From assembly GCA_965235115.1 (NCBI GenBank), contig OZ249453.1:6200001-6264000 (forward strand): DNA of 64,000 nucleotides, given 5' to 3'. Under the pieces are notes generated by a model, which was given only the letters and a program-made list of their open reading frames with translations, searched no databases and had not been told where the DNA came from. Within the stretch, counting starts at the first letter, position 1, and every line of letters starts with the position of its first letter. Origin of the DNA: Laetmonice hystrix. Taxonomy: Eukaryota. Positions 3,358 through 47,903 of the stretch are shown here, piece by piece. A program made the position numbers and the translations under genes.

Positions 3358-6275
3358 GTAAGTACTTCTTTTAAAAACCTCAATGTCTTCCTATCATGGA
3401 AGAAAATTTATGTGTTCTGGCTTTGGTTGATACCGTCAGAATTTATCTCAGCATCGAACAATGGCGCTCATTTTTAAATTTGTTTTCGCTAACCAATGGC
3501 TACTGATAGCATTTCGTGATGAATGGAAAATGTTGTTTCGCTATCGTAGCATGAAGTTTTTTTCTGAAATTGACCAGCGCGGATCTTCGAACAGATAAGA
3601 GATTTAGGAGCCTTTTGAATTAAATCACTGTTTGACAGTCACATGAATTATCGAGTCTTACCGGGAAAAGATGTATGTGATCCTTATCAAGCTAACAGAG
3701 CCCAGAGAATTTATGATAGGCCTCTCGTGACTAGTAATGGCGGCGGCCATGGAGTGGTATTATCGTGGCCCTAAGTGGCCCTTTGGAAGTCCATGGCGGC
3801 GTTGTGAGAGTGATAAGTCCTTGAGTCGGAGGACTTCAGCAAACAGCTCCTTGGGATATGCCTGGTCACATAAGCAGGTAGTTTTCACGATAAGCCATCT
3901 CCCCCCTCGACAGCGTGCATGACATCAGTGATGTTCAGCATAGACTTCTACTGAAAGACGCTACTCTTTGACTGAGTCTAAGGCGGAGAGCGCGGGAGGG
4001 GGGCTACTTCAGGCAAAGACAAACGTGGATTCTTGGGTTGGTGAGATGTAAGGTATGAGGAGAGATCTCTCGACTTGAAAGAGAACGGAAGATGAATGGG
4101 GAGAATTCTTGATGTTTGGACATCAACGGGTACCTGTTCTCTCACATCTTGGGTTGCCGGTGTCGCGGTACATACCATCCGGCGGACTCAGCTTTCCGCC
4201 TCAAGTGCCGTTCCTGCTGTCAGTCTCAGTAGGCATAATAACGATTGTCACACATAGAAATAAATTTTTGGATTTGAGAGTTGTAGATCAGAGAGTGTCA
4301 GTTCATAAACTGACAATGTTTGGTCGCAGTTTGTTTTATTACACATGATTATCAAAAGGCCAGATTGGTTACAGGCGGAAAGTCCAGCACAGCGGAAATT
4401 TCAGACTGCGTCACCGGCGCTGTGTATTATTTGTAGTATGGCTTTGTTTTACGAAACCCAGGCTGTCTGTCCCTCATCACTTCCCAATGTCGGCCTGACT
4501 CCCGGATACCCCACCCCACCCCACCCCCACCCCCACCCCACCGATAACAAGGAATCATTGCCATGATAACACGTACTTAACGGAGACCAAGAGTCCTTAT
4601 CTCATTCTCATCTCATCTCCCTTCGATGTACAGCTCCCTGAGCGCCCCCTATCGGGGCCCTTATCGACTACTCTGGTCCCATGTATGGGCAGTACTGTAT
4701 GTGTTGTACATTCTGTCACATTGATGATAACGGCGGAGCAGTGATTATATTGCTGAGTGGGCCTGGCATGTTGTTTACGACATCGTGCGTGTTAATAAAC
4801 ACAAAACAGCCATTATTACCCAGAGGGGATCGACTTTATTTTAAAAAGAATTTCGTGATTAGATGAAGTTATATGTCTTGGGTAAGATGTAGAAGTGGCC
4901 GTGTGGATTTAATAAACTCGAGATCGTTTTAGTTCTGCGAAAGCGTTAAATTGGATAGAAGCCTTAAAACTGGGTATTTAATTATGAAGAGGCACGAGAC
5001 GAGTGAGGAAAATTTGAATGTGTTTGTACAGAGTGGCACCTGAGGCTTTATAAAACCAAACATGAGGATCTGGAAAACCCATCAACCAAGTATTACGTCA
5101 TCTTTCTGGCAATGTGACTGCCACTTTCTCATTAGTGTCATTCTGGCCCCAAAACGAGGTTTTCCTACAACCTTTGTTCTGCCGCCTATTGTCCTGGCTT
5201 TATGGAAAACATGCTTCAAATTGTGTAGGTCACCGTCAAGACTAGATACCGGTGTTAGCCAATCAGAAGTTGTTTGTTATTGTAACCTGATAGTCATGAC
5301 GTAACGCTGTGCCTGATTGGACAGTCATGATAATGTCTTTACCTTAATCCCTAGAGATTGACGGAATCACTCGGGATTGCCAGGTGTGGCGTGTAAATGT
5401 CCATACACGAGAGTCCATTCACACCTGTGGGGGATCATTACGTACTTACGTACTTAGCTGTGAATGGGGAGGCGTGGCGGCCTTTTACTCCAGGCAGAGA
5501 GACACTGTCCAGGCGTACTCCAGTAGGTAACAGCGGCAAGTCTCAGACAGTAACACAACACCACGCTAAGAGCGTTACTCACAGAAACTTTGCACCACTA
5601 TTGTTGGCGAGGTTTAAGAAATGACCGCACTGACAGTCGAGCAGTCTACCTGCACCGCGGCGGAGATGGACGCTATTGTTAGTCAGCCAGGTAAGGGGGG
5701 GTAAAAAAGATGATGATGTAAATGGGGGTCATGAACACGCCCCCCCCCCCCCGACCCCGGGGCACAGTTAGATCTTGGCGTCCATGTGAACTCATTTAAA
5801 AAGTTACGAGTTTCTCGGAGCGGGATCACCCAGGTGAGGTGGTGTCCTCTGTACAGTTAGCGGTGGCGGTGCCTTGACTGGCGATAATTAAAGCACCTCT
5901 CACAGCCGGCAAAACAAGACAGCTGTGGTTTTTTGTTATCGGTGTTCAAAGTGTTGTGTTCAGCAGATTACATTTCAAGATGAGAGCTGGTTAAGTTGAA
6001 GGAGCTTGAAACGGTTCCCGGTTATAATCAGGAGTAGGGACGTTTATGTGACTGGCAGCATGTGTGTCTATCTGTCTGTCTGTCCCTGTTTGTGTGTCTG
6101 TCTATTCCTGTCTGTCTGTCTACATGATTGATTCAAACACCAGCCGTGTATCTGCAGGTTACAGACATGTGTCACACACACATGTCACAGACATGTGTCA
6201 CAATCAAGTTAAGTGTGACACAGGGGAGTTGCAGACAGACGCCACCTGACCGACAGTACGATATAAAAAAAACTG

Positions 6276-6394
6276 GGGCCCAGTTCCAAAATACTTAAGA
6301 TCTTGCTTAAGCTTAAGCTTAACGCTTCTGATTGGCTGTTCTGCTTAGACCAACCAATCAGAAGCAAGATCTTAAGTTTTTAGGAACTGGGCCC
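6276..6394. mobile_element. Short palindromic non-autonomous DNA element (MITE-like)
   Basis: 12-bp terminal inverted repeats GGGCCCAGTTCC (6276-6287) / GGAACTGGGCCC (6383-6394), plus nested inverted arms CTTAAGATCTTGC (6294-6306 / 6364-6376) and GCTTCTGATTGG (6324-6335 / 6354-6365). No clean target-site duplication seen. Confidence 0.7.
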
Positions 6395-7554
6395 AGATAC
6401 CTGACGGTTGTAATTTTTGTTACCCAATCAAATGCTGATTTACTTTCTGGTTGAGCTGGGAGTGGCTATTGTCATTGATTTATGAACAACATCATTAAAA
6501 TAATCATCTCAGGTTATATAGAACCCACACCTGTAATGATAATGTTTTTATGACGTTGATCGAGGCAGGGGGAGTTGTGGTCAGTTTGATGATTTACATG
6601 ACTGGCCAGTGGTCAGTGAATGGGTGAGCGTCCCATGTGTGCAGAGACGCTGCCAGAGACCATGTTGACCGGGTTACCTGTCGATCTTACCTAACCCCAC
6701 AACACCTGTGATTAGCTCCGTGTGGCGGACCTCCCCCCCCCCTCCACCACCCAGCCCCCACCCCACTAGTTTATAACCCCCTCAGGGGTACCCAGGAACA
6801 GTTAATTACACAATGAGAGGAGGGGAACCGGGGTGGGGTAGGGTAATTAGGGGAAACAAGTAAAACCACCCTACCGTGATGGAAACTGACGGGCTGTCAC
6901 TCTGGCATGCTCCTGTTATGGCAAGCCATGAATAATGAATAGATTAAAGCGTTTTGTCCATTAATAGCCCTGCCATCCAGGTGTGTTATCTAAGGGAAGT
7001 TATTAGAATTCAGGCCTCACTGACACACTTCAATGGGAGCTTAAAATGTCCACTTTCCCCCAGACAAGGCCAGTCGCGGTGAGCACGGCTTTAACAGGGA
7101 CTTACAGCGCCCAGGGGACATTGACCTGAGAAAGGACATAGTATAGGGGTAATACCCTCGGGTGAGGGGGGCTGGGGGTGGGGTGGGGGTCGCCTCGAGG
7201 AGACAGAATTAGGTCACACCATTCAGGTAAAGAAATTTTCAGCCTGGCTACCAAATTGTGACGTTAAGACGCCAGGTGGTTGATATGCGGTTGTTGAGTA
7301 CGGTTGATATATGGTTGATACATGGTTGATACACGATTGTTGATATACAGGCGGGGAGGGGTGTGGAGGGGGCTATTGGCAGTAATGGGATTTTAAGGAG
7401 TTTAATGCCCAGTGGAAAGCGAAATGGATCACTCTCTTTTATGGGTCCTAGAATGTGGGGAAAATGCCTGATTAGAAAAGGTAGGGCGTTGAAGTTGATA
7501 TTTAAGATAAATAGATAAATAAATATTTAAATTGGGTCCAGCAGCGGAAGTACG

Positions 7555-7599
7555 CAAGCGTTAAGCCTTAACTTAAGTAAGATCTTAAAAACCAGGCCC
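7555..7599. mobile_element. Diverged terminal fragment of the same MITE family
   Basis: caagcgttaagccttaacttaagtaagatcttaa...aaccaggccc aligns to the reverse complement of 6276-6328. Confidence 0.5.
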
Positions 7600-7648
7600 T
7601 GGTGTCATCACAGACTTTGTCAGACCCGCCTGGTTTGCCGATTGAGGC

Positions 7649-11612: not shown

Positions 11613-14600
11613 CGCACAGAGTGGTGGGTTGATAGGTTCCACATCACGAAGGATCCAAAACGGGATCAGAACAAACTGGTTTACCAATCACACGCCGTTT
11701 AGATTTCATTTAGGCCCTGGTGAAGTCAGGATCGCTCCGACAGTGCGGAATGCAGGACAGGGTTTAAACGGTGGTATGGGGCGTCGGGATGGAGATGGGG
11801 TACGGGGACAACTCCTCCCTGATTGAGGGAAATAGGGGTCAATCGAAGATTAAATTTGGATTCTGTAGTCTGATTGGTTGGGATGGAGCTACCTTTCTGG
11901 GTGGTTAGTCCAGGATTTGACTGGAGCAAGGGGTGAATGAGGACAGGGAAGGTAAATAGGATCAGGAGGAGGACAAATTGTGTGCTGGCACACGGGGGGA
12001 GGTTGTTTGGGGAGATGATGGGGGGGGGGGGGGGGGCGCGTGGTTGAGGTGTAACCCTTGCTGTACCGACCGTAGTTCGGAGCCTTCACAGTTTGTCATA
12101 GTGTTGGTGTATGCCAAGGTCATGTCAGATTTTGAGTCTCGGAAAACGTGAACGGTGATGCCGATTAAACTTCGCCAATCTCATCCCAGGACATCTCGAC
12201 CGTGGCGATCAGAGTCCGGCTTGAAGCCCTACGATATGTGAGCCGAGATCTGGGCAGGAGGAGGAGGGGGGTCCTGATCAATGTCATCCGGAGGAGGGGT
12301 GGCGCTGAGCGTCCCTCATGATGGGGCTGGGGGTGGAGAGATGGGGGTACAGATGGGGGTGGACCGGCTCAGTATCCGTCAGAAAGCGGACAGTATAGAC
12401 ACCATGATGGTGATCCTAGGAATTGACCGGGATATCGGACGTGATATACGCCATACCAACGGCTCAACCAACGCCAATCCGTCCTGACATTGACCATGTT
12501 TGGGAACTCGTACCATAACTCAGCACACAAAACAACAAGTCCATGTCGGTGTGCAGACACAAGTCGGCCAGCCGGGGCACAGAACAGAATCTCTACTGAA
12601 CGCAATCTGATTGCAGGCCTAAACGACCGTTTTCTATGTGTTGTCTGACATTTATTTAGTGGTGGGGGAAGAAATTGCAGTTTTCCTCCCATATTAGACC
12701 GAAAGCTCTTACTTTTGCAGCACATACATAAAGATTACAGACAATTGCGTGAAATTGCTCAAGTATTTTGGCCACCGTATATGACCTTGACCTAACCGTG
12801 ACAATTTGAAGCTCCCAAATAAGGAAAAATCGCGCCATTATCCAGATATTCAAAAGTGAGCAAGTAATTGGTTGTTGTACGTTTTGTCGGCAAGATATTC
12901 AAACGACAGTTTTTATACGAGAAAGGGTCACGGGGCAGGAGGAAGAGAAGCGTTTCTTCTCACAACTGAAGGAAAATGGTCGAATTTGTTATATTTAACA
13001 GTTGTGGGGGCTGGATGCCGGTCATGCGCGACCGATACTGGTGGAGGTCCGAGAGAAACACCGCCTTGAGCAGTCAGTGTGTAGTCAGTTAATATGAACC
13101 GAGTTCAGTCAGTAAGATCCAGTCAGTTCGTCCTCCACTGTCCCTACGTTCCCAGCCTCCCACACTCCCATTCACAGCTGCGTCTCTCAGATAATGGAGG
13201 CGCCGGGACGCTGCGATCGCGACAAACGCAGGCCGATTGTCGGGTGAGAATATCTCCTGTCCTTGGCAGGATTAACTATTGCCACCTCCATTAGGGGCCT
13301 GATGTGAGTGCGGCACGCTGGGGGTTAGTCAACACTTCCCCCATCCCCCACTCAGCCCTGTTATTAGATTAAGGTACGACGCCATGGAGGAGTTTCTCCC
13401 AGCCTGTACCCGGAGTAAGCTCGGGGTTCCCACTAATCCACGGCCGAAAACTCCACTCTCATAATCTACAGCCGAGCGAGCCTGGATGGATTCTTAAAAT
13501 CCACCCGATAGGGGGCGCTGTTGTTTATCCGTAATCCATGGCTATGGGAGCGGCTCTGCAAGTCTCATTCACTGTGGCAGGGAAAAAAATCATGGGGGGG
13601 GGGGGGTACCAGAACTGTCTTAATGGAAATGGGAGGCTGATTGTAGGGGCTGAAGAGATTTTGTGAGGGAGAAGCACTTCAGGGAGCTTTAGCGACCACA
13701 ATATGACTCAGGTTTAGAATAATTCTGAGCTGCAGAAGCTACGCGATGTGCCATGATATTCTGGTCATTGCCCACATTGTATTGGTTTTCTAAAGCAATG
13801 TTGGAAAATTGGTTCGGGTACTTCACGCCAAAGACGTGTGAGCATTTAATACTTTTTTTCATGGTTCTCTCGGATTCAAACTACATGTAAATGCCAGCAT
13901 AATGGCACCTCTGTTAGTTTTTGATACTCTTTCGCTCAGCCTGTACCTGGGTAGTTACTTGAGATGGTTTCAGTGAGTGTACTTTCCGTATTCTATCCCA
14001 ACCGCTCCCTATACAGTGATTATATAGACCTAGCCGTCCGACATACAGGGAACGAACGCAGGTAGAGATGTCACCTTTGGCCCGATCTTTTGACTGCCTC
14101 GAGGTTGTAAGGCTATACCAGCTGCATTTCCACTGATAGCTCTGGAATTAAGCCAGAATTGAAACAACTTTTTCTGTGAAGTGTCAGTGGCACGGCCTCC
14201 ATGGTGGGCCAGGGGGGTTGTAAGTAGTTGGAGGGCTACAATTTGTCATGTCTTCCCTGGCAATCGCCCTCACAAAGGAGCTCAGGTTGGGAGCAGAGGC
14301 CGGGGTAAAAACTGGAGCCGCAATGGTAGGAGTGGGTCTGAGAGGTGCTGGTGAAACCAAGGGGGCGTGATGGGGAGTGAAACGTACGACACTGTCAACC
14401 AGTTATTACTGTAACCACGCCATCATTACATCCACCACATGGTAATCTTGTATAGAGGTCCTAACTTGGACGGTTACTGTAGAGTTTAAGGATAACTCCT
14501 GTATAGGGAGCGTTCTACTGCAGCGTTATATACGACACCAGGTAATGCCGTCCTATTAGGTCCATTAGAAAAACGCATGTTTTTTCCTGACTGGAGGCGT

Positions 14601-14681
14601 TGGTATTTTTTACCTGTAAGGTTCATTATCTGGTTTGGATCTGTGTAAAGGTGTGAATAATAACACCTGGCAGTTATAGGG

Positions 14682-15122
14682 GTGGCAATTACACCTGGGC
14701 CGGGTGGTAATCACACCTGGGCCGGGTGGCAGTCACACCTGGGCCGGGTGGCTGGCGGGAACGACACCCAAGTCTATTGGTGTCGTTATGGGATGCTCGG
14801 TATATGCTGGGACATTTTATTCTGGGACACCCCGTCTTCTGGGATACTCCCTCTCTGGGACAGTCCGTTTTGTGGGACAGTCCGTTTTGTGGGACAGTCC
14901 GTTTTCGGGGACCCTCCGTTTTAGGGGACACTCCGTTTTAGGGGACACTCCGTTTTAGGGGACACATGATGGTATCAGTAGGACAACCGTCAAATTCACG
15001 TACAATAGGTATCCTGGGACATGTCTTATCCTGGGACATGTCTTATCCTGGGACGTCTTATCCTGGGACATGTCTTATCCTGGGACATGTCTTATCCTGG
15101 GATATTTCTTATCCTCGGACAC
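14682..15122. repeat. Compound minisatellite block: 22-bp, 17/18-bp and 17-bp units
   Basis: cacacctgggccgggtggtaat (14682-14755), gggacagtccgttttgt / ggggacactccgtttta (14796-14965), tatcctgggacatgtct (15010-15122). Confidence 0.8.
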
Positions 15123-16769
15123 CCGCTGTGTGTTGTGATAAAGAAAAAGTATTTTTCTGGGGTCCAGTTTCAGAAAGTGAAGCGTCGGTTCTTGTAACCC
15201 AACCTAAGACGTGGAATTCACGTTGCATTTTACAGATTTCATATCGTTCAAAATGTTGGCGAACTGGGGGTTACAAAGACACTAACAAAGCAGTTCTGCT
15301 ATGTCTGACATAAAAAGGACCTAAAGATTCAGTTTCAACTCTGACAACTCGTTGGAGTTTATTTATTTGTCTGAACGCATCAGGAAATATCCTCTCAGAA
15401 GTTGGTGGAGTCCTCCCCCAAACTCCGAGCACACACGCCCAGAACCTCGGCAGAATTCCAGCCATGTTTTGGCAGACTGGATAAAAAGTGTCTCGATCAG
15501 AAAATGCACTTGAAGTCAGGAGTAGCAAAACAAGTTCGGGTTGGATTGAGGAAGGCTCTGTGAAATGTCCCGATGATGTTTACAGATAAGGCTGAGTTTG
15601 AGCAGAAAGTTGGTGAAAGTTGATGCAAGAAAAACAGCGGTAGGATGACAGGTTGGACACAGGAGTGTTGACCTAGTCGGACTGAGATCCTCAAGGAAAT
15701 ATTTGCCGATAAGGTCATCAGGTTTTCAGATGAGAGGAGGTGATATCGGGGGGGGGGGGGGGGGGGGGGGTTCTGGGGAGGAACTCCGGAGCTTTCACAC
15801 AAACATAGACGACCGCACTGGGGCCTTGACAACAACATCGCAAGACGAAGCAGGCATCATTTCAAGATGCCGATACAGGGCTGGTAGAAAAAAAATATCA
15901 GGGGAAGCTTGCTTTCCTGTTGTTATGTGGACGATATCCTGCTCGTAACTCAGTGAGGTCTGATAACATTGTGTGTGTGTCTCCAGCGTACAGATCGAGT
16001 TATCAAAAGTCATGGAGTACAGGGTGCCAGATCTCACCCCACACCCCCTGATCGGTGATCCACCAACCTGAGCACCCTCCCGGATCAACGACCCGGAACC
16101 GATCCACCGATAACATGATTCAAAGTCACCTCTATGTAACTCCCATACTGAAGATCTCCAATCCCGCCATCATTTTTCGGCGGGAGAAAAAAAAACACAA
16201 TAGATTTGGACAGAAACTGCATTGAAAACGGGGCCAGTGGATGGGACAGTGAGAGCTTTACCTAATGTAATCTGCGGAGAGGTTGTGAGGACTGCAGGAG
16301 ATAGAAGGTTAGACCGGTGAGGGGAGGGGGGTCGGGACGCTGTAGGATAAAGGACAGCCCGTTGCGGAGACGAAGATTACAGCGAGTCTTTCGGTGCGCA
16401 CTCAAAAACAATCACCGCTTGATTTCAATCTATTTGAAGCTCGGGCCAGCCGTAGGTCGGACCGGCCTTGTCACAGGATCAGTCTTACAGTCATGTTGGG
16501 GCATTATTCTCGGGATGTAATGGAGACAGAACATGATGGAGTGGATGAAATAGGACCATGACCCTGCATTTTAACGTCTTTGATGAGCGGATCTGAAGAC
16601 CCGCACGCCGGGGTGGAGATAGGGTGGTCTGGTGGTGAGGAGGTGGGCCAGGCGGTGTGGTGATCGGGTATACGGGCAGTTTAACTCGGTGTTAAAAGGG
16701 GGCAGGTCTGTTCTGTCACTGTGGTAATTTATATATGTGCAGGATAAAAATGTGTGGGTTAAATTCTTG

Positions 16770-16805
16770 TCTGATGATGTGTTTTTTATTTGTTTTCAGG
16801 TAAGT
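16770..16805 (+). promoter_or_regulatory. Candidate recursive splice site RS1 (3' splice site immediately followed by 5' splice site)
   Basis: ctgat(branch-like)gatgtgttttttatttgttttcAG|GTAAGT; AG at 16798-16799, GTAAGT at 16800-16805. Confidence 0.7.
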
Positions 16806-16837
16806 GTTTTTGACCATCCTTCCATCCGGGTCGGTGG
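16800..16837 (+). other. Putative 38-nt cryptic RS-exon (frameshifting)
   Basis: A second donor TGG|GTAAGT at 16838-16843 follows the RS1 acceptor. Confidence 0.55.
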
Positions 16838-19680
16838 GTAAGTTATATTAAAACACCCCACGGAGCCATTTGATTCATTTATGAGGAGTAAAAATCCTCA
16901 GTAAAACGATATTGAATGTGATACTTATCTGAAAATAAGTCTCAGGGGGTGGTATTATGTAAAATAATCAATTTATGAGTGGGAAATCAATTTCTTACCT
17001 TTCATAATATATTTTAAGGCTTAACTTTACCTTTGGTCGTAACTTCACAGTGACTTATTATCAGACTTAAAACAAGTATAGATTTATTATAGAAAAACGC
17101 TAGTTTTGAATACTCTCCAGGTTTCCAGTAAACGAACCACCTGAAGGAACAGAGATACGGATTTAAAAACAGATTTAAATGTGTTTTTTTAAATAAACGT
17201 GTCACCGGGCAAATGGTATAAAAATAACCGCTGTAGGTGGTCCATTAAAATTGTAAAAGAGAAGAAAAAGTTTGTAGATAACGAAACTGGTTGAGGATCC
17301 GGATAACTGTGAAACGCCAAGTGTGTTGTTAATGGATTTTATTTGATTTTAAGAGACGTAATTTAATATCATCGTGGGAGTTAGATCAGTGAGGATAGGG
17401 TTATTATAATTACAGGTATGTGTTTTGGGACACCCTAGATCACCCTCAGATCGGAGGGTAGGGTGTCTAGTGTGTAGGGTACCCAGGTGGGTAGTGATTA
17501 GTAATCAGCAGGTAGGGTAAGGTCAACATTCCACAGATGTCCAGGTGGGGTACGGTTACCTGAGTCTGACCCAGACGGTCACCACATCAAATGATCGCCC
17601 TCATGTCTGTCTCGGAGTCAGATCCGGGAGGGTGTGTACAACTGTCTGGGGGAGATGGATCGATCTATTGGGGTGGTTGGAAGGGGGTGGGGGTAAGAGT
17701 TCTACCCTCTGAGTCAACCCTCCCAGACTGGGCTAGCACTCCTCGACCGTGGTCTGTGGTCCAGAGGTTAGTGCGGCAAGTTGGTACATTCTCAGGTGAT
17801 ATATTGTAAAATGTCACCATATGTCACCAAGTGTCACTACGTGTCACTTCAGGTATGTACAGAGTGATGCCCTGCAGCAATACGGGGATTTCCCTTCCCT
17901 GTGCCCCAAACAAGTCCCAATGGATCGAATCATCAAGATCCTGGACCTCCCGGTCAGTCCCCCCACGTTATGTCGTGTGACCTTCAATAAAACACTCCCC
18001 ATCTGTTTCTAGCTGTTGCCAGAATTTTTCAAACCACTCCAAATCAGGACTGATGTCATGTGTTTGCTGACAAATTAAAAACCAGTACATGTATTGATTT
18101 AAAGAAAACATTCTTCTGCTGTGATCGGATTCCAGAGGCCAGCATTCACAAAGTTTTTCTCAACATTGTGATGAAACATGGAAAGGTGGGGGTAAAAAAC
18201 GGGTTCAAAGTTACGAACAGGTTGTGTGGCCAGAGAATTGTCAGCACAAAGGATGGCATGATTCCAGCAAGGACACAAACACGGGCTCGCAATGCATCAT
18301 TAAAGTACACTGTAACCTCCGTGAGGATATCAATTTATAATTGTTTTAATAATTATATCAAAATTACCGAGTATTAATTGTCATTTTTGACCAGTTTTAT
18401 TAGTGTGAGTATAGGATACAGAGGTTTGTCATATACTTGATGGTTCCGTTCAGAATCTGTAGACTCACACAGGGTGAGTCGTGTGACTCAGGGTGGGACT
18501 AAAGGGGGCTGACTCAGAGGTTGGATTAGGTGTAGAATACGCAAGGATTACGGTGAGAATGAGGGATTAATGATGGATAAGACGGCACTAATCTGAACTG
18601 AGATAATCTATGAGAAATCCTGGCTGTAGTGGCACTGTAAGTATGAAATGATGGATTACGTGTCAAGGTTAGCTCTTACAGTAAGAGTTACTCTCATCTC
18701 ATGTTCCTGGAGGGATTATCATCCAGTGGTTGTAACTGAGACGTGGATTAACGTAACCGATGGGGAAACTGGCTCCTTAATCTACATTAGCCACTCAATA
18801 TTAGTGCGAATCCCCCCGGGTGATGCGGTCTGATTTAAGACAGGTACAATAAAGATGAGTTTGTCTTTTGTCAAAGTCTGCCTCGCCTGATCCATTGGCG
18901 TTGATCCCTTCAGGGAGGTGTACGCCACAGGTGTGTAGTGTAGTGTTTAGGGTTTCTCTGGATTAAGGAAATCTCCGGCGGGGAGTGAGAAGTGGTTGGA
19001 GGTAATCCATGGTTGGATAATCTTACCTTCCTCAGGGGTGTACAATCGGGTCTACCTGTGAGGACCAGGTGGAAGATTTGACAACTCGAAGCCAAACGAA
19101 ACCTGGCGCCGTGCTTGTAGCGGAGATGGAGACTGAAACTTATCTCAGCTCCGTGTAACTAGTTGGTCCAACCTGACTACACTCAACTGGCTCTGAGCAG
19201 AAGTTTCCAAGTAATAATAAAGATATATCGAGTCAGATTGGTATGTGTATGACCGGCAGTTTGTGTACAGTGTCTTACCAAACTGGTCATACTGTAACAT
19301 GAAGACTGAATGGAATATAGACCCCTAGCTGGGTCTATTTTCGAAGGGAGTCCATTTTCAATATCATACAATCACTGCCAACCTCTACTCGGAGGTCACA
19401 GTACCGCTAGAGGGCAGTAGGGTATGATCTGGTCATATCAGGTGTCAGCATTTATATCAACATTCTATATAATATTCATCTTTCCTGATTAGCTTACAGA
19501 ATTGTGAGTTCTACAAATAAGTTAATAAGCTACATCATTCACAATATATGACTTATCAAGTTGCTACAAATGTCAACGAAATCGTCTATGTAATATGTTG
19601 TAGATTGCTATGAAATATTATCTGAGAGTTATAAAGCTGGAGGTCTAGGATTGAGTAAGGAAGGATTCAGTGATCTCTAG

Positions 19681-20198
19681 ACAGTGGAGATTGATAGAAA
19701 AACATGAAACTCAAAGATTGAGTTAGACTGACAGACGCTAAAGGACTGTAGATGATTTGGTTGATATAGAAACAGTGCCAGTGTTTGTGATAGTGTCGCT
19801 AGCCATCAATAACCAGGTGCACCTTGGCTCTAGTCACTGTAAACGTATGTAATGATTCAGTGACGGTGACAGTGGAGATTGATACTCAAAGATTGAGTGA
19901 GATTGACAGAAGCTGAAGGACTGTAGATGATTTAGTTGATATAGAAACAGTGCCAGTGTTTGTGATAGTGTCGCTAGCCATTAATAACCAGGTGCACCTC
20001 AGCTCTAGTCACTGTAAACGTATGTAATGATTCAGTGACAGTGACAGTGGAGATTGATACTCAAAGATTGAGTTAGATTGACAGAAGCTAAAGGACTGTA
20101 GATGATTTGGTTGATATAGAAACAGTGCCAGTGTTTGTGATAGTGTCGCTAGCCATCAATAACCAGGTGCACCTTGGCTCTAGTCACTGTGAACGTAT
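19681..20198. repeat. ~175-bp tandem repeat x3
   Basis: acagtggagattgata...ctcaaagattgag...ctctagtcactgtaaacgtat starts at 19681, 19869 and 20044. Confidence 0.9.
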
Positions 20199-29249: not shown

Positions 29250-29284
29250 CTGATATGATATTTTCTTGTGTTTTTCAGGTAAGT
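29250..29284 (+). promoter_or_regulatory. Candidate recursive splice site RS2
   Basis: ctgat(branch-like)atgatattttcttgtgtttttcAG|GTAAGT; AG at 29277-29278, GTAAGT at 29279-29284. Confidence 0.7.
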
Positions 29285-29415
29285 TTGCTGATGGTAGGGA
29301 GTAAAAAGTTGGCAGTGGTCCTGGTACCTCTTGGCACCAGAAGGTGAAGTACATAATGAAGGTAAAGTCAGATTACACATGTATATTTTGAGGATTATCC
29401 TGATGCTAAGATCAG
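29279..29415 (+). other. Putative 137-nt cryptic RS-exon (in-frame stop; poison exon)
   Basis: Consensus donor CAG|GTGAGT at 29416-29421; read in frame after the upstream exon it reaches TGA after 22 codons. Confidence 0.55.
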
Positions 29416-38586: not shown

Positions 38587-41500
38587 GAGAAGCTTGCCAT
38601 ACATTATGAATGACCTGCACTTGGAGAGATTTAGCCAGTTTGTTGTGAAGAATGGCACAGTTCTGAATGTATCCATATTTCATATTTCCCCAAACAAACA
38701 AAAGAACCAAGACGCCCTCAAGCCTAGAGTAGGTGTGCCCAGATATGTTGGCAGGTGGGACCTGCGGCAGGGACAACAGGAGGTTGTGTGTGAACCAGGG
38801 ACCAGGCCTCCTGGGGGCAGGCGTTTGCCTCACCTGAATTAAAAACAAAAAAGGTCCAAGATGTAGGGCGGCCAAGGTCCTCAGGGTCTGGTATCGCCGG
38901 CCCACTGATTCTGGGACAGTAATAAGGTCAGTGGCTACAGGGGTGAAACTTCCACCCCCAAGGGGCATTACCCTCGGGGGTGTGGTGACAGGAAAGGGGT
39001 GGCTGCCCTCACAGTGGGGTAACATACCCCAGGATGATCGGTGCACGATACAGGCGTCTGGAACTTTGACAGGTTAGAGAAATCTTTTTTTTCTTATTTG
39101 TGTTTTTATTGTACGGAGAAGTAGGCCGATTATATTAGATTGTAAGGTCGGAGAGTCCAGCGATAGGGACCCATCCATTGGCCCGTTATCTCTCCACGGA
39201 CCCCTTGGTTAGTGACGTCACACCCCACAGTGCTGACTTGAAACGACAGGGTTGAGTTATGGAGTATGTTGTCGACTCGCGCCAGATTAAATACGGTATT
39301 GTACGAACACAAAGACCCGCTCCTGTCGAGTCAGGTCCAAGTCTTTGTGCTCTGGCAGTGACAGCGGGACCTTATCACAGACCTGAAGACATCTTTAAAA
39401 GGCACCCACAAAGAGCACAATATATAACCTGAAAAAAATGCTTTGGTTGTCAACACTTGGAGGACGTCAGAGATTTTACCAAAATAAACACCAGGAGACG
39501 ATAAGGTCGTTGAGGTGCACCCCCTTTACATTGCCTCCTTAGACAGATCCGTGTTTGCACAGATTTCCTACAGCGTCTGCCCAGGAGGTTAGCTGAGAGC
39601 AAAGGGAAAGTTGCTATGTCGGTCTGCTAATTGGAAGCACCGCGCCACAAGTCAGTACTCGAGTATTTTCATGATTACCATATTTGGTACTCGCTGTCCC
39701 ACTGACAGCTGTATTCAGTTTGACTGGAAAGTGTCCACAAGTTAAACCAATACAATATAGGCCTATGGATCCTTAACCCTCCCTTAACTTGTATCACCAC
39801 AGAATGTATCAGTGTTCTGCGTGTTTGGAGCTCCATAATGGGGCGGTGTTAATTTTAATCTGGGCGACCGCCCTGAGCCCAGACCGCCAAACCGACAACG
39901 ACTCGCGTTTCATGTCGGGAGGAATCAGTTTTCATAGCCGGGTAAAAGTTGGACAAAATTTAGTCGCGCCCTCTGCTGGTGCAAATTGAAGGTGGAGTTT
40001 TAGAACGAGCCCTGTGGTCTGGATGTAATGAGAACCAGACCGAGGCTGTAGGGGACGTAATGAGGACCAGATCGAGGCTGGGCAGAACGCAGTCAGTGCC
40101 ATCTGACGGCTGCTGCGGGCAACGCCGGGTAAAACGAAACGCGTTTTGAGCTGAGCATGCGTGTTACAGCAAACTGTAGCAGACAGCCAAGACAATGATG
40201 ACAATGATGATGATGATGATGAGAGTAGCATGCTACAAAAAGGCCCGCATGCTGCCAATCATCTGGTTACGTATAGCAATCTGTCGAGACGTTGCTAGTC
40301 TCACAGCCCGCCATGGTTGGCAGGTTATGTTCGCATGTTTTTCTCTCCCCATTAACGTCAATCACGTGAAACCACTCTGTGCGACGTCAGGGGGCGTGGC
40401 TCCCGGTCGCCAAGGTGACAGGTCCGTCAAAGACGTTTGATTGATGGAGGGGCCAGTGGCTGGTCAACGACCAGGAATATGTCGTGATCAGTAGCCCGTT
40501 GTTTCTGCTGACCACGCCCCCAGCTACTGACTGGGTCACGCACAGAGATACTCTATACCACATTAGGAGAACCCATACTTTGGTAGTGGTCAATCACTCA
40601 TATATCGTATATGGGGTCAATATATTGACAGTTTTTTCCATGGCAACCAGTTCTAAGTGGAAGTACGCACAAAGGCACTCAGTACACAACACAATTATGA
40701 TGTCAGGCTACCTGTAACTGTATAAATATAGCTTTGACTTGTAGAGAATTGTAGCATTCCATGGCATGCAAAATATCATTGGCTCACCTGTCTGGGTACC
40801 AGATATCTGATAGGTGGTATGGCTTACACAGGTCAGCAAACATTTCATAGGTCGGTGGACACTTAGGTATATTAGATTAGGTAATCAGGCGACTCAGAGA
40901 AAATGATGATGAATCAGGCCAGGACAATAAGGACAGATGTGACTACAGGATATGGCTGGCGGTATGTGACAGGCGACACATAGGATGGTTTTCATCAAGT
41001 TTTTCCTTCACGTGCCTACATATTTTCTCCCCTTTAAAAGCCCGATTTAAGAGGTCAGTGGTGGAAAGGTGGCAGATGTCGGGGTCGGGTGATTAATGAG
41101 CTCAGGGGCCCAGCCAGACAGGGAAATCTTTGGTCTTTTATGTGAGTGCGACCAGACAAATTAGATCAGGGCCGGCCATGGAATCCGGAGTATGGTATTA
41201 ATATTGATTATGATGTCGGGAATGTACAACGGTAAAATAGACCTCAGAGATGGTGATGGAGTCGGCCGGCAGAGGGCACCACCGCTGTCTTTGATCACGG
41301 AAGAACACGGTGGATTCCCAGAGGTCAAACTCGGGGTCAAATGTTTGCCGACCCAAGGTGATTTAGCAGGGGAGCCTGTCAAAGACAAGGCCAGCTCCGA
41401 GCGTCCGTGCTGCCAGGCTAGCGTCTCGAAGGATTCCAAAACGAGGTCAGATAACTTGGTTTGGTGCGACATACATGGATCGGGTAAGGGGACTAGGACT

Positions 41501-41741: not shown

Positions 41742-42477
41742 GACTTGTTATTCTCAGGGCGATGAACAGAGAAACCTGAAAAATCTTCATGTAAAAAAGA
41801 ACCTTACCAAAACTATCCCAAATTCTTTGAATCAACAAACTACAAAAATGCGGACTATGTCAGAATATGGTGACTGCTTCAACCAATCTGATTTCAAATC
41901 AATCGTTTTCCCCTAAATGAGGTTGTGAGGGTTGAATGGATTTATTTTGGCTAGGAGATTCTAGTTCAGTTATGATAAATGAGTACCATTTAATAGTATT
42001 TGTTGGATTGTGTGCCGCCAAAGGCCGCCATCATTTCATTTAATGGCTGCGACCAGCTGTGCTTGGCTCCTGTCTGAGATTGGTGTATTTTGAGAGACAA
42101 CATGTTTGGGTGGTATTAGGCCAAGCCGACTGACAGGCCAACTGACCATCGTGACCAGGGGACAGAGGGCACTGACCCCCACCCGGGGTGAGAGGTCGGG
42201 GAGATTTAAGAGGGTCAGGGGTAGATAATCTTACCCTCTCGAGGGTGAAGGGTCGTTTGACAGGGGGTAAGTGTTTGAGGTTTTTCTCTGAGGGTAGGTG
42301 TCTCGGAGCAGATGCTCACGAACAAAAACCCGAACTGTAGCCGGCCAGTCTTCAACCCAGGAGCTCGAGTCCTGCCCTTTGATTGGTCAATTATGGGCTC
42401 AAGTGTTTGCGGGACCCTGAGGCTGTCCTTAGGTTTATACAGTGATGGCCTGGAGTGTGTCATCCCCATTTACTGGA

Positions 42478-43305
42478 GGATCACCAGTTACCCAGTGCCC
42501 TTCTCCTGTCTACCCAGTTATCACCAGTTACCCAGTCTCCTGACTACCCAGTTATCACCAGTTACCCAGTCTCCTGTTTACCCAGTTATCACCATTTACC
42601 CAGTCTCCTGACTACCCAGTTATCACCAGTTACCCAGTCTCCTATCTACCCAGTTATCACCAGTTACCCAGTCTCCTGTCTACCCAGTTATCACCAGTTA
42701 CCCAGTCTCCTATCTACCCAGTTATCACCAGTTACCCAGTCTCCTATCTACCCAGTTATCACCAGTTACCCAGTGCCCTTCTCCTGTCTACCCACTTATT
42801 ACCAGTTACCCAGTCTCCTGACTACCCAGTTATCATCAGTTACCCAGTCTCCTGACTACCCAGTTATCACCAGTTACCCAGTCTCCTATCTACCCAGTTA
42901 TCACCAGTTACCCAGTCTCCTGACTACCCAGTTATCATCAGTTACCCAGTCTCCTGACTACCCAGTTATCACCAGTTACCCAGTCTCCTATCTACCCAGT
43001 TATCACCAGTTACCCAGTGCCCTTCTCCTGTCTACCCACTTATTACCAGTTACCCAGTCTCCTATCTCCCCAGTTATCACCAGTTACCCAGTCTCCTGAC
43101 TACCCAGTTATCACCAGTTACCCAGTGCCCTTATCCTGGCTATCCAGTTATCACCAGTTACCCAGTATCCTATTTACCCAGTTATCACCAGTTACCCAGT
43201 CTCCTGACTACCCAGTTATCACCAGTTACCCAGTCTCCTGACTACCCAGTTATCACCAGTTACCCAGTCTCCTGACTACCCAGTTACCACCAGTTACCCA
43301 GTCTC
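42478..43305. repeat. 34-bp minisatellite with 45-bp variant units
   Basis: ccagttatcaccagttacccagtctcctgactac, over 20 copies; explains the 214-aa ORF at 42455. Confidence 0.92.
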
Positions 43306-43345
43306 CAGGCAGTAATTAATGTGTGTAGACTGATAACTGTGTAGA

Positions 43346-43678
43346 TGTATTGAATCCCAATGAGTGTTATCTCATGTCCATGACGTCCTGCTATGTCTTC
43401 AGTCTGTGCGTGATCCCGGATCATCAGACACAGGTCTGAGACTGACATGATAACTACATACATGTATTGAATCCCAATGAGTGTTATCTCATGTCCATGA
43501 CGTCCTGCTATGTCTTCAGTCTGTGTCTGTCCCCGGATCATCAGACACAGGTCTGAGACTGACATGATAACTACATAATGTATTGAATCCTAGTGAGTGT
43601 TATCTCATGTCCATGACGTCCTGCTATGAGAGTCTTCAGTCTGTGTCTGTCCCCGGATCATCAGACACAGGTCTGAGA
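43346..43678. repeat. 117-bp tandem repeat x~3
   Basis: tgtattgaatcccaatgagtgttatctcatgtccatgacgtcctgc... starts at 43346, 43463 and 43579. Confidence 0.88.
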
Positions 43679-45989
43679 GATGAGAGAGAGGTAGGATAAC
43701 TGAGGATAACACAGTCAGATAGGGTTGGAATGAGGAGAGAGAATGATACGGTGTGGGAGGGGGGGGGCTGAGAGACCCCCCCCCCCCTCCTCCGTACCGG
43801 CAGGTGAGGAAGTAATGATCTCTGATGGAGACTGATTGGATTCGTGTGGTACCTGTAATTGTCACACCTGGCCAGGTGAGGTCTCGATCACGTCATTATG
43901 ATGAAAGGGATCGACGTCCTCAGGTGTATACGACGGCCTCTGGGGGCTGGAGGTGGGTGGGCTGACCCTGGAGGTGTGCCTGGAGAGGGGCGGGGACAGG
44001 AGGAAAGGGATGTTGGTGATTACTGGCTGGAATCTGGGACTAAGATCAAACGGCACTGAATGACGTGGATCACCGGCTCCGGGCTGGACGGACTGTGGGT
44101 TGGAAGAGGGAATCGGAAACTATGAACGAGAGAAGGGAAGAAGAAAAGAGAGAGAAAGAAATTGTTGTCTTCTCTCGATCTGTTGAGTGATAACGTTATG
44201 GTCCGGCGAACCCGGATGTCAAGTTTCTCTGATCTCTCATCATTCATTCTGTGGCATCCACTTCTCGTTTTGTGGCATCGACATGTAATTTTGTGGCATT
44301 TAGAGGAGTGCAGCAACGTCTTGCAGTAATTACTATCCGTTTCCCCCAGAATGTCTAGAAGATAAGAAATGGCGGGTACCTTTGCTGATTTTAGGATAAC
44401 AGGAATAGCGACATGCCGATACCGTGAGGGTAAGTCCACCCACCCCCTGCCCTCAACCCCCCTACCCCCCCCCCCCCATACATACACACCCTGTCAGTCC
44501 TCACCTACTACATCACCCTAACATGGATGTCCATCACTGAGGGCCACAAAGGATGTCGGTGGCGCCACACAGTGGACGGTTTGTACACTATGACCCATTT
44601 TGTGGACGTTCTAACTTTGACCGGGACAGGCCGTCCATCAGGGGTGATTGTGGTTGGGGGGGGGGGGGCAGCCCCACTGTGGGGCCCTGGGAGGTACCGT
44701 TGTTATGGAAACCGGATTGTTTAGGGAATTCGCTGCCCAGGTCAGACGTGTTTTGTATCACAATATGACCTGGAGAACGATTGCTTTGAGTCGACCTTAT
44801 TGTTACTTTATCTCAGGCACTCTATGTCTCTAGGTTTGGTTGGCCAAGTAAAAACTCCATGGCTTTTCCTTTTTACGAGGGTGTTGGAGTAATAATTGTG
44901 GTAGGGTACAGGCAGTCATTGCCGGAAGTAGGGTTAGGATTGTGATCAGGCCCCAATCACTCCAGGGTTTCGACCACCTCCAGAGTGGCATTTAACCCTT
45001 GTAAACCTGGTTTAGTTAACCGTAGTGAAGCTGGTTTAGTTATCCCTAATATACCTGGTTTAGTTAACCCTAGTGAACCTGGTTAGTACCCCTAGTACAC
45101 TTGGTTTTGTTAACCATTGTAACAAACCTTGTATTATTCTGCAGCCTCCCAGCACTGCCTGTTGTCTGTGGATGTTGGCTGGGGTGGGCTGAGACGTGAG
45201 GGGTGGGGGTGATGTACCCGGCGACCCCAGGGTGTGGGGTTGAGGGGTGACCGTGGATATTGTCCACCTGGTACACCTGGCTGCACAGGTAAAGATCAAA
45301 AGCCAGGGCTGGGGTAGAAAGGGTAGAAAAGAACAGACGTTAAGATGAAGGCCTCTCTCAGCGCACGCCATCCCCTTGGCTCAACCCCCCTCTCACTGCC
45401 ACCCCAAACTACCTTACCCCACCCCACCTCTGTCATTGTACCGGTGGGAGCAAGGTCTTCTGTGGCGACCTCACTCGGCGAGTACACGTACCAATCATCA
45501 GTGCACCAACCAATCATTTGTGTTCAAGAATGTGCCAACCAATCGTTGGTTTTTGTTTAGGTGACGAGGCGTACATGTATGTGAGGGGAAACATTTTTGT
45601 CTTGCTGTTTCAGGTTTATGGCTCGCGACCATGAAAAAGATAATTTGTTGATCATTAGACATATGGTGCGAGAGAAAATTGAGGCCGTAGATCTTAAAAG
45701 CTGAGATAAACACAGAGAGAAAAGATTTTGTAAAAATAATGAAAAGAACACTTGTAGTCAGGATAGATAAGTGTTGTGTCTTTCTAACTCTCAGCATGTT
45801 TTGGCTGTCAAATAAAAACAAGTCGACAATGGTTAGGACTGTTGGTCGTATACGGAGTTAGGTCACCATTGGGTAGATTGTCTTGGGGGGACCATATCAA
45901 AAAAATCAAAACACCATTGGAAACACTGAATGATAACGGTGGGTTAATAAAATATAGTGGAATCGCTTGTGAATTGATGGGGGGGGGGG

Positions 45990-46452
45990 ACTTGTGAGGT
46001 ATTGTGACCTCGGAATACGTGATGGAGTGACTTGTGAGGTGTTGTGACGTCACAATTAGTGATGGTGGGACTTGCCAGGTATTGTGACGTCAGAATTTGG
46101 TGATGGAGATACTTGTGACATATTGTGACGTCAGAATACGTGATGGAGGGATTTGTGAGGTATTGTGACGCCAGAATTTGGTGATGGAGGGACTTGTGAC
46201 ATAGTGGGACGTCAGAATACGTGATGGAGGGACTTGTGAGATATTGTGACGCCAGAATTTGGTGATGGAGGGACTTGTGACATATTGTGACGTCAGAATA
46301 CGTGATGGAGGGACTTGTGAGGTATTGTGACGCCAGAATTGGTGATGGAGGGACTTGTGACATATTGTGACGTCAGAATACGTGATGGAGGGACTTATGA
46401 GGTATTGTGACGCCAGAATTGGTGATGGAGGGACCTGTGACGTATTGTGACG
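45990..46452. repeat. ~40-bp minisatellite arranged as an ~80-81-bp dimeric higher-order repeat
   Basis: Alternating gtgatggagggacttgtgaggtattgtgacgccagaatttg and gtgatggagggacttgtgacatattgtgacgtcagaatac units. Confidence 0.88.
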
Positions 46453-47459
46453 TGTTTGTTGATAGAAGTCTGAGAACATTCTTGATGGGAAGTCCTATAC
46501 ATGTAAAAGCCGTGGGTAAAGACGCTGTTTAGAGGTCTGCCCCCTCCAGGCTCACTCGCTAGTCACTGCCACTGAGCCTATCACCGGATTACCTGCATAC
46601 CTTTAGGATTTGATGTCCCCATTCACCCGCTCAAAGATAAATTTCTTCCGCAATGAATAATGCATTTGAAAAAAAATTGAAAATCCCCAATGGTGCACCG
46701 TAGATAGAACCTGTAACAATTTGCCGCTAGAGGGTGTTTGTCTAGGTTAGGTATGTGACAGGGACAGGTAACGACCGTCGTGACGGCATATAAAGGATTT
46801 CATTGAGCTTGTTTACCTGGGTGGAGATAACTAATTATACTCTCGACAAAAACATGAACTAAAAAATAATCTTGCTCATGGCGGTATCCTTGGTAGTTAG
46901 CATCGGTGGGTTCGGGAGGGGGGGTGGGGGGTGGGGTGGGGGTAGGGGTGGGGGCCGGATGAGGTCGCTTCTCTGGGGCACACATTTATACAGACAGTAT
47001 ATGACATGCCCATACATAATGTCAAGGACCCTCTGTCCTCTGAATTTTGTTTGTTTTGAAAAGGTGAACGAAGAGTTTTTTGGCGGTTAAAGTTCAGAAC
47101 TCCTGGTAGAAAGGGAGAAAATATTCATGTCTGTCCATCCGTTCATTTGTATTTGAGAACGCTGAAGCCGGAAGCGTTATGCGAAAGTAGCGATTGTAAA
47201 TCCACAAGGTCAGTGGTGGATGGTCAAGATGGCCGGTAGATACACGTATCTAACATTGTCCTTGGGGCTTTGTGTTGGCCCTGGGGTGACGAATTATAGG
47301 TCGATTTCTCGGACAGTTTGACACGTTGCTGTGGCATGGTGAGGCTGAGCAATATGTATCGCAGGACAAGGGTGTAAGGTCGGGGACGGGTGGGGGGATG
47401 TTGTCATGGACTGCGACGTCACCGTTGGTGTTACGGTTGGTACGCCGCCATGTTGGTGC

Positions 47460-47492
47460 AGTGCCCTCTGCTGGTGAAGCGCCCTCTGGTGG
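47460..47492 (-). promoter_or_regulatory. Tandem CTCF-like motifs ~410 bp upstream of the large Eph exon
   Basis: Reverse complements CCAGCAGAGGGCACT (47460-47474) and CCACCAGAGGGCGCT (47478-47492). Confidence 0.5.
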
Positions 47493-47903
47493 CCAAGAGG
47501 GGCGTCCCGTTCATCAGGCCAGCACGGTCTCAGGGGCTCTCCTCCATGCTGCCCGAAATTAAATTAGATTGGGTCGGGCCCGGTGGGGGCGCTGGGGGTG
47601 GGAGGACTGGGGGGTGGGGTGGAATCAGCTGGCCCGGGAAGAGGTAAAAACCTGCGTGTTGGTGGAAATAATAGCACAGGAATAGGACAGGAACGAGAGA
47701 GGCGGCCACTGCAAGAGAATTAAATATACAAAATACAATTGACTCTCTCAGACACCTTTGACAAATTTATCACACAGGATAATACTGTAGGCCGAATTCA
47801 TATAATACATCATTTATAAAGCCGTTCTCTATGTACAAAAAGAAAAACTGGATGTAATATTATTCTGTGTCGCCGACTAAGTTGTCTGTTTTGTATGTTT
47901 CAG

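Follow-up and report, generated by a model that had tools for sequence, protein, structure and literature searches.

Candidate recursive splice sites in the 44.5-kb intron of an Eph receptor gene from a spiralian, probably annelid, genome

Is the 44.5-kb intron of this Eph receptor gene removed in one piece, or stepwise by recursive splicing? The locus lies in a 64-kb stretch of DNA, the whole of which we analysed and refer to as the window. Eph exon 2 reads ..TLLDTRLTKNGESLGW..KVG and then runs through GGG/GTAAGT at 3358 (a slash within a sequence marks a junction), and exon 3 begins at 47904 after ..tgtatgtttcag and terminates ACTG/GTAAGT, with its donor at 48577. Between them lies intron 2 (3358-47903; 44,546 nt; phase 0), and translation gave a continuous reading frame from exon 2 into exon 3. 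The product of exon 3 is the Eph ligand-binding domain (WRETSYNL..VCNV..NWLRT..), for which a homology search returned PF01404/PF25599 homologues and 1140 Eph-type matches. Exon 1 was not found within the window. The sense strand of the gene is G-rich, with a skew of +0.11. The gene features are as follows.

3260 to 3357, plus strand: Eph exon 2, 98 nt (..V-TLLDTRLTKNGESLGWQTHTGTQAAAADTKVG; terminal ..GTTGGG)
3358 to 3363, plus strand: authentic 5' splice site GTAAGT, the donor of Eph intron 2
47880 to 47903, plus strand: authentic 3' splice site of Eph intron 2 (..ttgtctgttttgtatgtttcag), read from the sequence
47904 to 48576, plus strand: Eph exon 3, encoding the ephrin ligand-binding domain and the first part of the Cys-rich domain

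An earlier note on this DNA had drawn attention to two sense-strand sites with CTGAT, a U-tract and TTTCAG/GTAAGT, at 16799/16800 and 29278/29279, which would divide the intron into segments of 13,442, 12,479 and 18,625 nt. Coordinates, sequences and segment lengths all proved correct, and we refer to the sites as RS1 and RS2.

16771 to 16799, plus strand: RS1 acceptor half, with CTGAT, a U/G-rich tract and terminal TTTTCAG at 16799
16800 to 16805, plus strand: RS1 donor half, GTAAGT, read from the sequence
29250 to 29278, plus strand: RS2 acceptor half, with CTGAT, a U-rich tract and terminal TTTTTCAG at 29278
29279 to 29284, plus strand: RS2 donor half, GTAAGT, read from the sequence

The junctions read tCTGATgatgtgttttttatttgttttcag/GTAAGT at RS1 and tCTGATatgatattttcttgtgtttttcag/GTAAGT at RS2, and at both the A of the branch-like CTGAT stands at -26 from the junction (16774 and 29253, respectively). 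The full consensus TTTTCAG/GTAAGT is present at each site on the sense strand, with T at -4 to -7 and so with TT at -5/-6. Over positions -25 to -7 the T fraction is 0.68 and 0.63 at the two sites, at least the 99.7th percentile of the intron (the 99.9th for RS1), and it is G, rather than C, that separates the U runs. RS1 and RS2 share the top 5' splice-site score among all AG/GT sites of the intron (12.6 bits, on a generic metazoan matrix), and when this score is taken together with the pyrimidine tract they rank as the best two of all intron AG/GT sites on both strands.

Directly downstream of each site lies at least one further donor, which would close a short cryptic exon (RS-exon).

16800 to 16837, plus strand: RS1 cryptic RS-exon, 38 nt, frame-shifting
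16838 to 16843, plus strand: RS1 RS-exon donor TGG/GTAAGT, an 8.8-bit 5' splice site at +38
29344, plus strand: RS2 candidate donor AAG/GTGAAG, giving a 65-nt RS-exon, 7.5 bits
29362, plus strand: RS2 candidate donor AAG/GTAAAG, giving an 83-nt RS-exon, about 7.8 bits, read from the sequence
29416, plus strand: RS2 candidate donor CAG/GTGAGT, giving a 137-nt RS-exon, 12.3 bits at +137

All of these RS-exon lengths (38; 65, 83 and 137) equal 2 modulo 3 and are out of frame, and an in-frame TGA at 29345-29347 falls within the 83- and 137-nt versions of the RS2 exon only.

These features suggest that RS1 and RS2 are probably genuine recursive splice sites of the Drosophila type, with cryptic RS-exons. 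Once Pol II has passed RS1, its strong 3' splice site (CTGAT, U-tract, CAG) would be recognised jointly with the donor at +38, the first step being exon definition of a cryptic RS-exon. Joining of exon 2, with its terminal ..GTTGGG, to 16800 would recreate GGG/GTAAGT; this regenerated donor would beat the RS-exon donor and splice to RS2, and RS2 would then be spliced to exon 3. Intron 2 would be removed as three lariats of 13.4, 12.5 and 18.6 kb, and the mRNA would end up without RS-exon sequence, whereas retention of an RS-exon would shift the frame ahead of the ligand-binding domain. Recursive splicing was also the interpretation of the earlier note, and it fits every sequence-level test that we ran (motif, position, RS-exons and class membership, described below); from the same DNA sequence we infer the mechanism itself, including in vivo use of RS1 and RS2, the step order and RS-exon skipping.

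The outcome at each site could depend on the competition between donors. The regenerated GGG/GTAAGT scores about 9.5 bits, calculated by hand with the same matrix, which is roughly equal to the 8.8 bits of the RS1 RS-exon donor; at RS2 it faces 7.5 (+65), about 7.8 (+83) and 12.3 bits (+137). Because the +137 donor scores higher than the regenerated one, the donor-competition rule known from flies could tip the balance from clean recursion towards including a poison exon. This bears on a second reading, in which RS1 and RS2 serve as acceptors for poison cassette exons (38 nt; 65-137 nt) whose inclusion is regulated and would cause a frameshift and nonsense-mediated decay of the Eph mRNA. Their role would then be the tuning of expression, not constitutive stepwise removal, and the GTAAGT at the exon start would either work as a switch, in the manner of vertebrate-type RS-exons, or be incidental. 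Besides the high score at +137, the usable donors after both sites, the 2-modulo-3 lengths of all candidates and the TGA in the two longer RS2 versions are consistent with such exons, and expressed RS-exons are known in flies and mammals (PMC8605326, PMC6224609). Ordinary poison exons, however, need no GTAAGT at the acceptor, and a perfect GTAAGT exactly there, twice in this intron and throughout the class, is a hallmark of skipping by re-splicing. We consider the poison-exon reading unlikely, although it overlaps with recursive splicing and is compatible with it.

Could two such sites have arisen by chance, as decoys that the spliceosome ignores or uses as noise? The earlier note had calculated that the 9-mer CAGGTAAGT should occur 0.17 times in the intron at equal base frequencies. 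The number is right, but two antisense copies lie in the window, at 511 and 51492 and outside intron 2, and the 9-mer alone is thus weak evidence. The tracts of these two copies are C-rich or purine-interrupted. The window also holds a decent antisense site, AG/GTGAGG with a U-tract, at 38833. The extended motif, in contrast, is rare. The 12-mer TTTCAGGTAAGT has 218 copies in the genome (627 Mb, both strands) compared to 98 for the reversed control, and is expected 0.0077 times in intron 2, so that the probability of at least two is about 3e-5; for the 13-mer TTTTCAGGTAAGT, with 88 genome copies, the corresponding P is about 5e-6. Both sites also carry an identical branch motif at identical spacing, a U-tract and downstream donors. 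In favour of chance, apart from the antisense matches, are the look-elsewhere effect of scanning many windows and the state of the intron in a distant relative. In that species, 66% identical in the ligand-binding domain, the orthologous exon 2 terminates alike (..CGAGGG/gtaagtac), and the orthologous intron of 18.7 kb has neither a site like these nor intron sequence that could be aligned. The orthologous intron of the nemertean Tubulanus polymorphus is only 1.6 kb long.

Like sites elsewhere in the genome bear on the same question. Our statistics for them come from 33 sampled unique sites and from coordinate lists, and are free of annotation; for the other loci, location in long introns and sense orientation are judged from strand concordance and GC skew. 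Three tandem arrays were collapsed, which left 199 loci for the count of neighbouring pairs. Neighbours at most 70 kb apart comprised 19 same-strand pairs and 1 opposite-strand pair, with about 2.2 of each expected (binomial P = 2e-5 for the same-strand excess). The earlier note had said that a comparable density of such sites on the antisense strand and in intergenic DNA would speak against its reading; with a strand concordance of 19:1 across the genome-wide class, they are equally dense neither on the antisense strand nor at random. The G-rich strand of the surrounding DNA carries the site in 19 of 21 class members overall, and in every one of the 15 U-tract sites for which 10 kb of context was available. 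A match to YTRAY, the branch motif, accompanies 12 of the 21 class members, compared to 23.5% of background windows (P = 9e-4). A 5' splice site of at least 7 bits lies within +20 to +160 at 81% of 21 sampled unique U-tract sites, as against 19.5% of the background and 17% of weak-tract sites (Mann-Whitney P = 2.5e-9, the cut-off between strong and weak tracts having been chosen after the data were seen); among the 17 U-tract sites that have one, it falls at +38 to +67 in 14. The composite pattern TTTCAGGTAAGT-N30-60-GGTRAG matches 27 unique loci genome-wide where about 4 are expected, a roughly 6-fold excess, and RS1 is among them (C30:6216794-6216842). RS1 and RS2 belong to a genome-wide, strand-concordant class of sites that share branch, tract and RS-exon features. 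Chance sites would yield neither the strand concordance nor the composite enrichment, and we doubt that RS1 and RS2 are of that kind.

Repeats also contribute to the motif in this genome. Two dispersed repeat families and the three tandem arrays carry TTT(T)CAG/GTAAGT and make up 11 of the 30 T-preceded sites sampled, and 2 of the 19 same-strand pairs are repeat duplicates, as would be expected if a transposable element or duplication had delivered the motif to intron 2 as well. The flanks of RS1 and RS2 (401 nt each), however, match themselves alone in the genome and are single-copy; by eye they differ, splice signals aside, from each other and from both repeat families; and both sites lie outside every tandem array. 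Such an origin is effectively refuted.

The two sites could instead serve another same-strand transcription unit within the intron, such as a nested gene, a lncRNA or an alternative 5' exon of Eph. The intron is large, and since no Eph exon 1 was found in the window, alternative promoters are possible. Sibley et al. 2015 reportedly tie the use of vertebrate RS-exons to alternative upstream exons. On the other hand, the ORFs tested inside intron 2 gave no hit in Pfam, minisatellite read-through explains those at 42455-43099 and elsewhere, and a nested gene would leave the twofold juxtaposition of acceptor and donor unexplained. We regard this as improbable.

Recursive splicing, our preferred reading, places RS1 and RS2 beside well-studied systems. 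Drosophila ratchet points are known in Ubx, kuz, Bx and other genes (Hatton 1998 and Burnette 2005, both cited by PMC2773006). They sit in very long introns, among the longest few percent. There, TT occupies -5/-6 in 99.5% of ratchet points (Duff et al., 10.1101/006163), most introns longer than 40 kb hold recursive sites (Pai et al., PMC6110457), and RS-exons are about 50 nt long, poorly conserved and out of frame (Joseph et al., PMC8605326). Like these, RS1 and RS2 juxtapose a (U-rich tract)CAG/GTAAGT with TT at -5/-6, lie in sense orientation, several together, within an intron of more than 40 kb, and are directly followed by a short cryptic exon (~40-65 nt) that is out of frame and has a donor of its own; motif excess and strand bias extend genome-wide, here without recourse to annotation. 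They differ from Drosophila sites in that their tracts are U/G-rich rather than U/C-rich and that the host lineage is spiralian, probably annelid, and not insect. Use, constitutive behaviour and conservation have been demonstrated in flies, whereas RS1 and RS2 are candidates predicted from DNA. Eph is absent from the fly papers searched (10.1101/006163, PMC6110457).

There are likenesses to vertebrates as well. Vertebrate RS-exons (Sibley et al. 2015, cited in PMC8605326 and 10.1101/2024.12.11.627982; Blazquez et al., PMC6224609) also reside in long introns of neuronal cell-surface receptor genes, are defined by a downstream donor and lead on inclusion to a frameshift or premature stop. Vertebrate genomes, however, have little sense/antisense enrichment of RP-sites (Shepard et al., PMC2773006), and in its strong strand-concordant clustering the present genome is closer to the fly. 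The same survey (2009) inferred an enrichment of RP-sites in large introns of mosquito, bee, beetle and sea urchin on evidence that, like ours, was purely sequence-based. It had no spiralian, and it used annotation-based sense/antisense ratios, whereas we combined annotation-free clustering with RS-exon and branch signatures and dissected one gene of an annelid-like genome.

Whether zero-nucleotide recursive splicing with RS-exons of ~40-65 nt operates genome-wide in this spiralian (annelid-like) animal, with roughly 100 sites or more that form same-strand ladders, we judge to be evenly balanced. If it does, the ratchet-point and RS-exon mechanism of flies would be ancestral to protostomes or bilaterians and not an insect speciality, with the Eph receptor gene among the clients of a genome-wide process. 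We found no report of annelid recursive splicing in the open literature searched, and none of recursive splicing of an Eph gene in a partial check of papers mentioning both.

Within the species, the RS1 region is present in DNA contigs from three public runs. In a comparison of low power, the contig X1, which runs across RS1, is identical to the window from 16715 onward and leaves the RS1 core unchanged. In a check of similarly low power, a within-species indel adjoins the donor of the RS1 RS-exon, whose GTAAGT is kept.

We placed the proposed sites within the Eph receptor gene, which lies on the + strand of the window. Intron 2 of this gene measures 44,546 nt and is in phase 0; exon 2 ends in ..AAAGTTGGG (last nt 3357), and the sequence just 5' of the start of exon 3 (47904) reads ..tgtatgtttcag. 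Exon 3 had 1140 Eph-type homologues in a representative library, and PF01404/PF25599 relatives. A search for exon 1 further 5' in the window yielded no ORF with a signal peptide. A slash marks splice junctions throughout.

3260-3357, + strand: Eph exon 2, encoding ..TLLDTRLTKNGESLGW..KVG, with GTAAGT next at 3358
16799/16800, + strand: predicted recursive splice (ratchet) site RS1, tCTGATgatgtgttttttatttgttttcag/GTAAGT
29278/29279, + strand: predicted ratchet site RS2, tCTGATatgatattttcttgtgtttttcag/GTAAGT
47904-48576, + strand: Eph exon 3, ephrin ligand-binding domain (WRETSYNL..YTVCNV..NWLRTPYI..)

When the sequence was re-read, RS1 and RS2 proved to be exactly as the earlier note had described them, and its segment lengths of 13,442, 12,479 and 18,625 nt were borne out. 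From 16800 on, RS1 begins GTAAGTGTTTTTGACC; from 29279 on, RS2 begins GTAAGTTTGCTGATGG. In both, the adenosine of CTGAT lies 26 nt 5' of the junction. Of all AG/GT positions in the intron, both strands included, these two score highest as 5' splice sites, and each has a pyrimidine-rich tract. On the intron's antisense strand, just one acceptor-donor juxtaposition comes near them in quality, ..ccttttttgtttttaattcag/GTGAGG at 38833 (- strand). Both sites are single-copy in the genome and lie outside the intron's many minisatellites. A repeat origin was rejected as extremely improbable: the 401-nt flanks of RS1 and RS2 each match only themselves in the genome. Three public runs of one sample, which contain exon as well as intron sequence, gave genomic DNA contigs at 13800-19799 (~25-50x, without joints); these contigs differ from the assembly at ~2% of positions and confirm the RS1 region.

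Could two such sites arise by chance? The earlier figure of 0.17 expected copies of CAGGTAAGT in the intron is arithmetically right, but the window also has two antisense copies, at 511 and 51492; these fall outside the intron and lack a U-rich tract. The 9-mer alone is therefore unconvincing. The extended motif, in contrast, is convincing evidence beyond chance. TTTCAGGTAAGT has 218 copies in the 627-Mb assembly, both strands counted (98 for a reversed-pattern control), with 0.0077 expected in the intron and P(>=2) ~3e-5; TTTTCAGGTAAGT has 88 copies in the genome, giving P ~5e-6 for two in the intron. The observation of two sites is confirmed and non-random, and that they are unused look-alikes seems unlikely. 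That they are splice sites of another transcript is less probable still; ORFs inside the intron had no Pfam match, and the long ones are minisatellite read-through.

Recursive splicing is the best explanation of RS1 and RS2, and a probable one. Directly 3' of RS1 is a 38-nt RS-exon, a short cryptic exon closed by its own donor (TGG/GTAAGT). At window 16839, in X3 (one of the public DNA runs), a 7-nt insertion (AAGTTTG) directly follows the GT of this donor, and the inserted allele still reads GTAAGT. Candidate RS-exon donors of RS2 lie at +65, +83 and +137. RS1's RS-exon and all RS2 candidates have lengths of 2 mod 3; an in-frame TGA is present in the +83 and +137 versions of RS2. In flies, competition between the regenerated donor and that of the RS-exon leads to skipping of the RS-exon (PMC8605326). 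At RS2, the +137 donor CAG/GTGAGT outscores the regenerated GGG/GTAAGT, so some poison-exon inclusion there is conceivable; that the sites serve as regulated poison exons is unlikely.

We then turned from recursive splicing at Eph to the genome as a whole, listing all 218 TTTCAGGTAAGT sites and collapsing three tandem arrays to leave 199 loci. Neighbouring loci at most 70 kb apart comprised 19 same-strand cases vs 1 opposite-strand, where uniform placement predicts ~2.2 each (Poisson P ~3e-12 for the same-strand excess; binomial P = 2e-5 for strand concordance). Flanks were sampled as 10-kb loci for ten clusters and as 3-kb loci for 30 T-preceded sites (copies with an extra T before the motif). 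Two same-strand pairs are repeat duplicates, and a local tandem duplication contains one further site of the sample. Class statistics rest on 33 unique sampled sites, RS1 and RS2 included, together with coordinate and pattern counts; 21 of the 33 have a U-rich tract (U-tract sites) and 12 do not.

The downstream donor and the branch motif are features outside the selection of U-tract sites. In the +20..+160 interval, 81% of U-tract sites had a 5' splice site scoring 7 bits or more, vs 19.5% of background windows and 17% of weak-tract sites (Mann-Whitney P = 2.5e-9), and in 14 of the 17 U-tract sites with a donor it fell at +38..+67. A YTRAY branch motif at -45..-16 accompanied 57% of U-tract sites vs 23.5% of background (P = 9e-4). 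Genome-wide, the composite of TTTCAGGTAAGT, 30-60 nt and GGTRAG matched 33 times vs 9 for the control, or 27 unique loci vs ~4 expected; these include RS1 and both members of several other clusters, with mutually different sequences. Where 10-kb context was available (15 U-tract sites), the site was always on the locally G-rich strand, and the Eph sense strand is likewise G-rich (skew +0.11). From their sequence features, these statistics would imply a whole system of such sites in the Laetmonice hystrix genome, beyond Eph.

Three further groups of TTTCAG/GTAAGT sites form ladders in the assembly:

C29:4423080-4576170, + strand: ladder of TTTCAG/GTAAGT sites
C10:12471157-12619008, + strand: ladder of TTTCAG/GTAAGT sites
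C21:15698341-15810567, + strand: ladder of TTTCAG/GTAAGT sites

Each comprises three to four same-strand sites in ~110-155 kb, several with RS-exon donors and with mutually different sequences; the ladders are candidate multi-step recursive introns of other genes.

Two dispersed repeat families also carry TTTCAGGTAAGT. Of the 30 T-preceded sites in the sample, 11, about a third, belong to these families, which need masking in any genome-wide motif count. Three tandem arrays have the motif in their unit; the two 99-bp arrays, on different chromosomes, may be one satellite family.

L026, L032, L035, L044, L047, L048, L052: repeat family A, internal TTTTCAG/GTAAGT without U-tract, ..gaagtcgaggataagttttcag/GTAAGTACTGGTGTAGC..
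L027, L049, L050, L051, L011: repeat family B, internal TTTTCAG/GTAAGT without U-tract, ..aaaagtgggagtttttcag/GTAAGTTTATGTCTTAG..
C3:533773-534478: tandem array, 99-bp period, 8 copies
C13:18047822-18048626: tandem array, 99-bp period, 9 copies
C13:12290108-12290360: tandem array, 47-53-bp period, 5 copies

The nearest relatives' homologues are in ENA ERZ26222911 (399-kb contig, 89-90% identity) and ERZ26695794 (71-76%); the closest named homologue belongs to an annelid, Paralvinella palmiformis (65% identical), and that of Tubulanus polymorphus, a nemertean, is 55% identical, by which the source animal is probably an annelid. In a 66%-identical relative (ERZ25069296), contig walking yielded the orthologous intron in full (18.7 kb), behind an exon 2 that ends ..GGG/gtaagtac as in the window; this intron had no consensus site, and nucleotide similarity was confined to exon 3. 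No site was found in the 8-10 kb covered 5' of exon 3 in P. palmiformis and a second relative (L025), and the orthologous intron of T. polymorphus is 1.6 kb. Since recursive sites go with introns of great length, the comparison with these relatives neither supports nor seriously contradicts the claim.

Most demonstrations of recursive splicing come from Drosophila and a few vertebrates. At the DNA level, RS1, RS2 and the wider class match the sequence grammar of Drosophila ratchet points. Fly ratchet points have a prominent pyrimidine tract, with TT at -5/-6 in 99.5% (Duff et al., 10.1101/006163), most fly introns >40 kb have recursive sites (Pai et al., PMC6110457), and mutation of such sites in flies yields strong loss-of-function alleles (PMC8605326). 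Computational analysis showed such sites to be enriched in insects and sea urchin, and vertebrates not to share this enrichment (Shepard et al., PMC2773006). In the open literature searched, we found no paper linking annelids to recursive splicing; for Eph, where the literature was partly checked, we found no report, and the gene is not named in the fly studies 10.1101/006163 and PMC6110457. RS1 and RS2 are predicted ratchet points of the fly type in the Eph gene of a spiralian, and the mechanism is of a kind already known. A non-model spiralian genome displays the full fly-type sequence grammar, both in a conserved receptor gene for axon guidance and more widely, genome-wide. This bears on the spread of recursive splicing and on whether its fly-type form, a zero-nucleotide ratchet point with a cryptic RS-exon, is ancient; confirmation would bring a third major branch of Bilateria within the range of the mechanism. 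For annotation, the pseudo-exons that such sites create shift the reading frame, and gene prediction may include them in error.

Some observations concern the surrounding sequence. On the Eph sense strand, G exceeds C in every 4-kb bin of the window (skew +0.02 to +0.49, mean +0.15), without A/T skew, and in 10-kb neighbourhoods of other RS-like sites the skew of the motif-bearing strand agrees in sign; the skew may be a transcription-coupled mutational asymmetry and a possible strand marker in this genome. In two relatives (L025:3385-5155; a contig of ERZ26695794), a hAT/ZBED1-like transposase ORF precedes Eph exon 3 by ~3-5 kb and is oriented like it; the intron in the window has no such ORF. 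Located 3' of exon 3 is a 3-kb G-rich minisatellite (60610-63608; 49-bp unit, ~61 copies, GC skew +0.49) that yields spurious overlapping ORFs of 875-942 aa without Pfam match, and the Eph introns contain >20 further minisatellite arrays.
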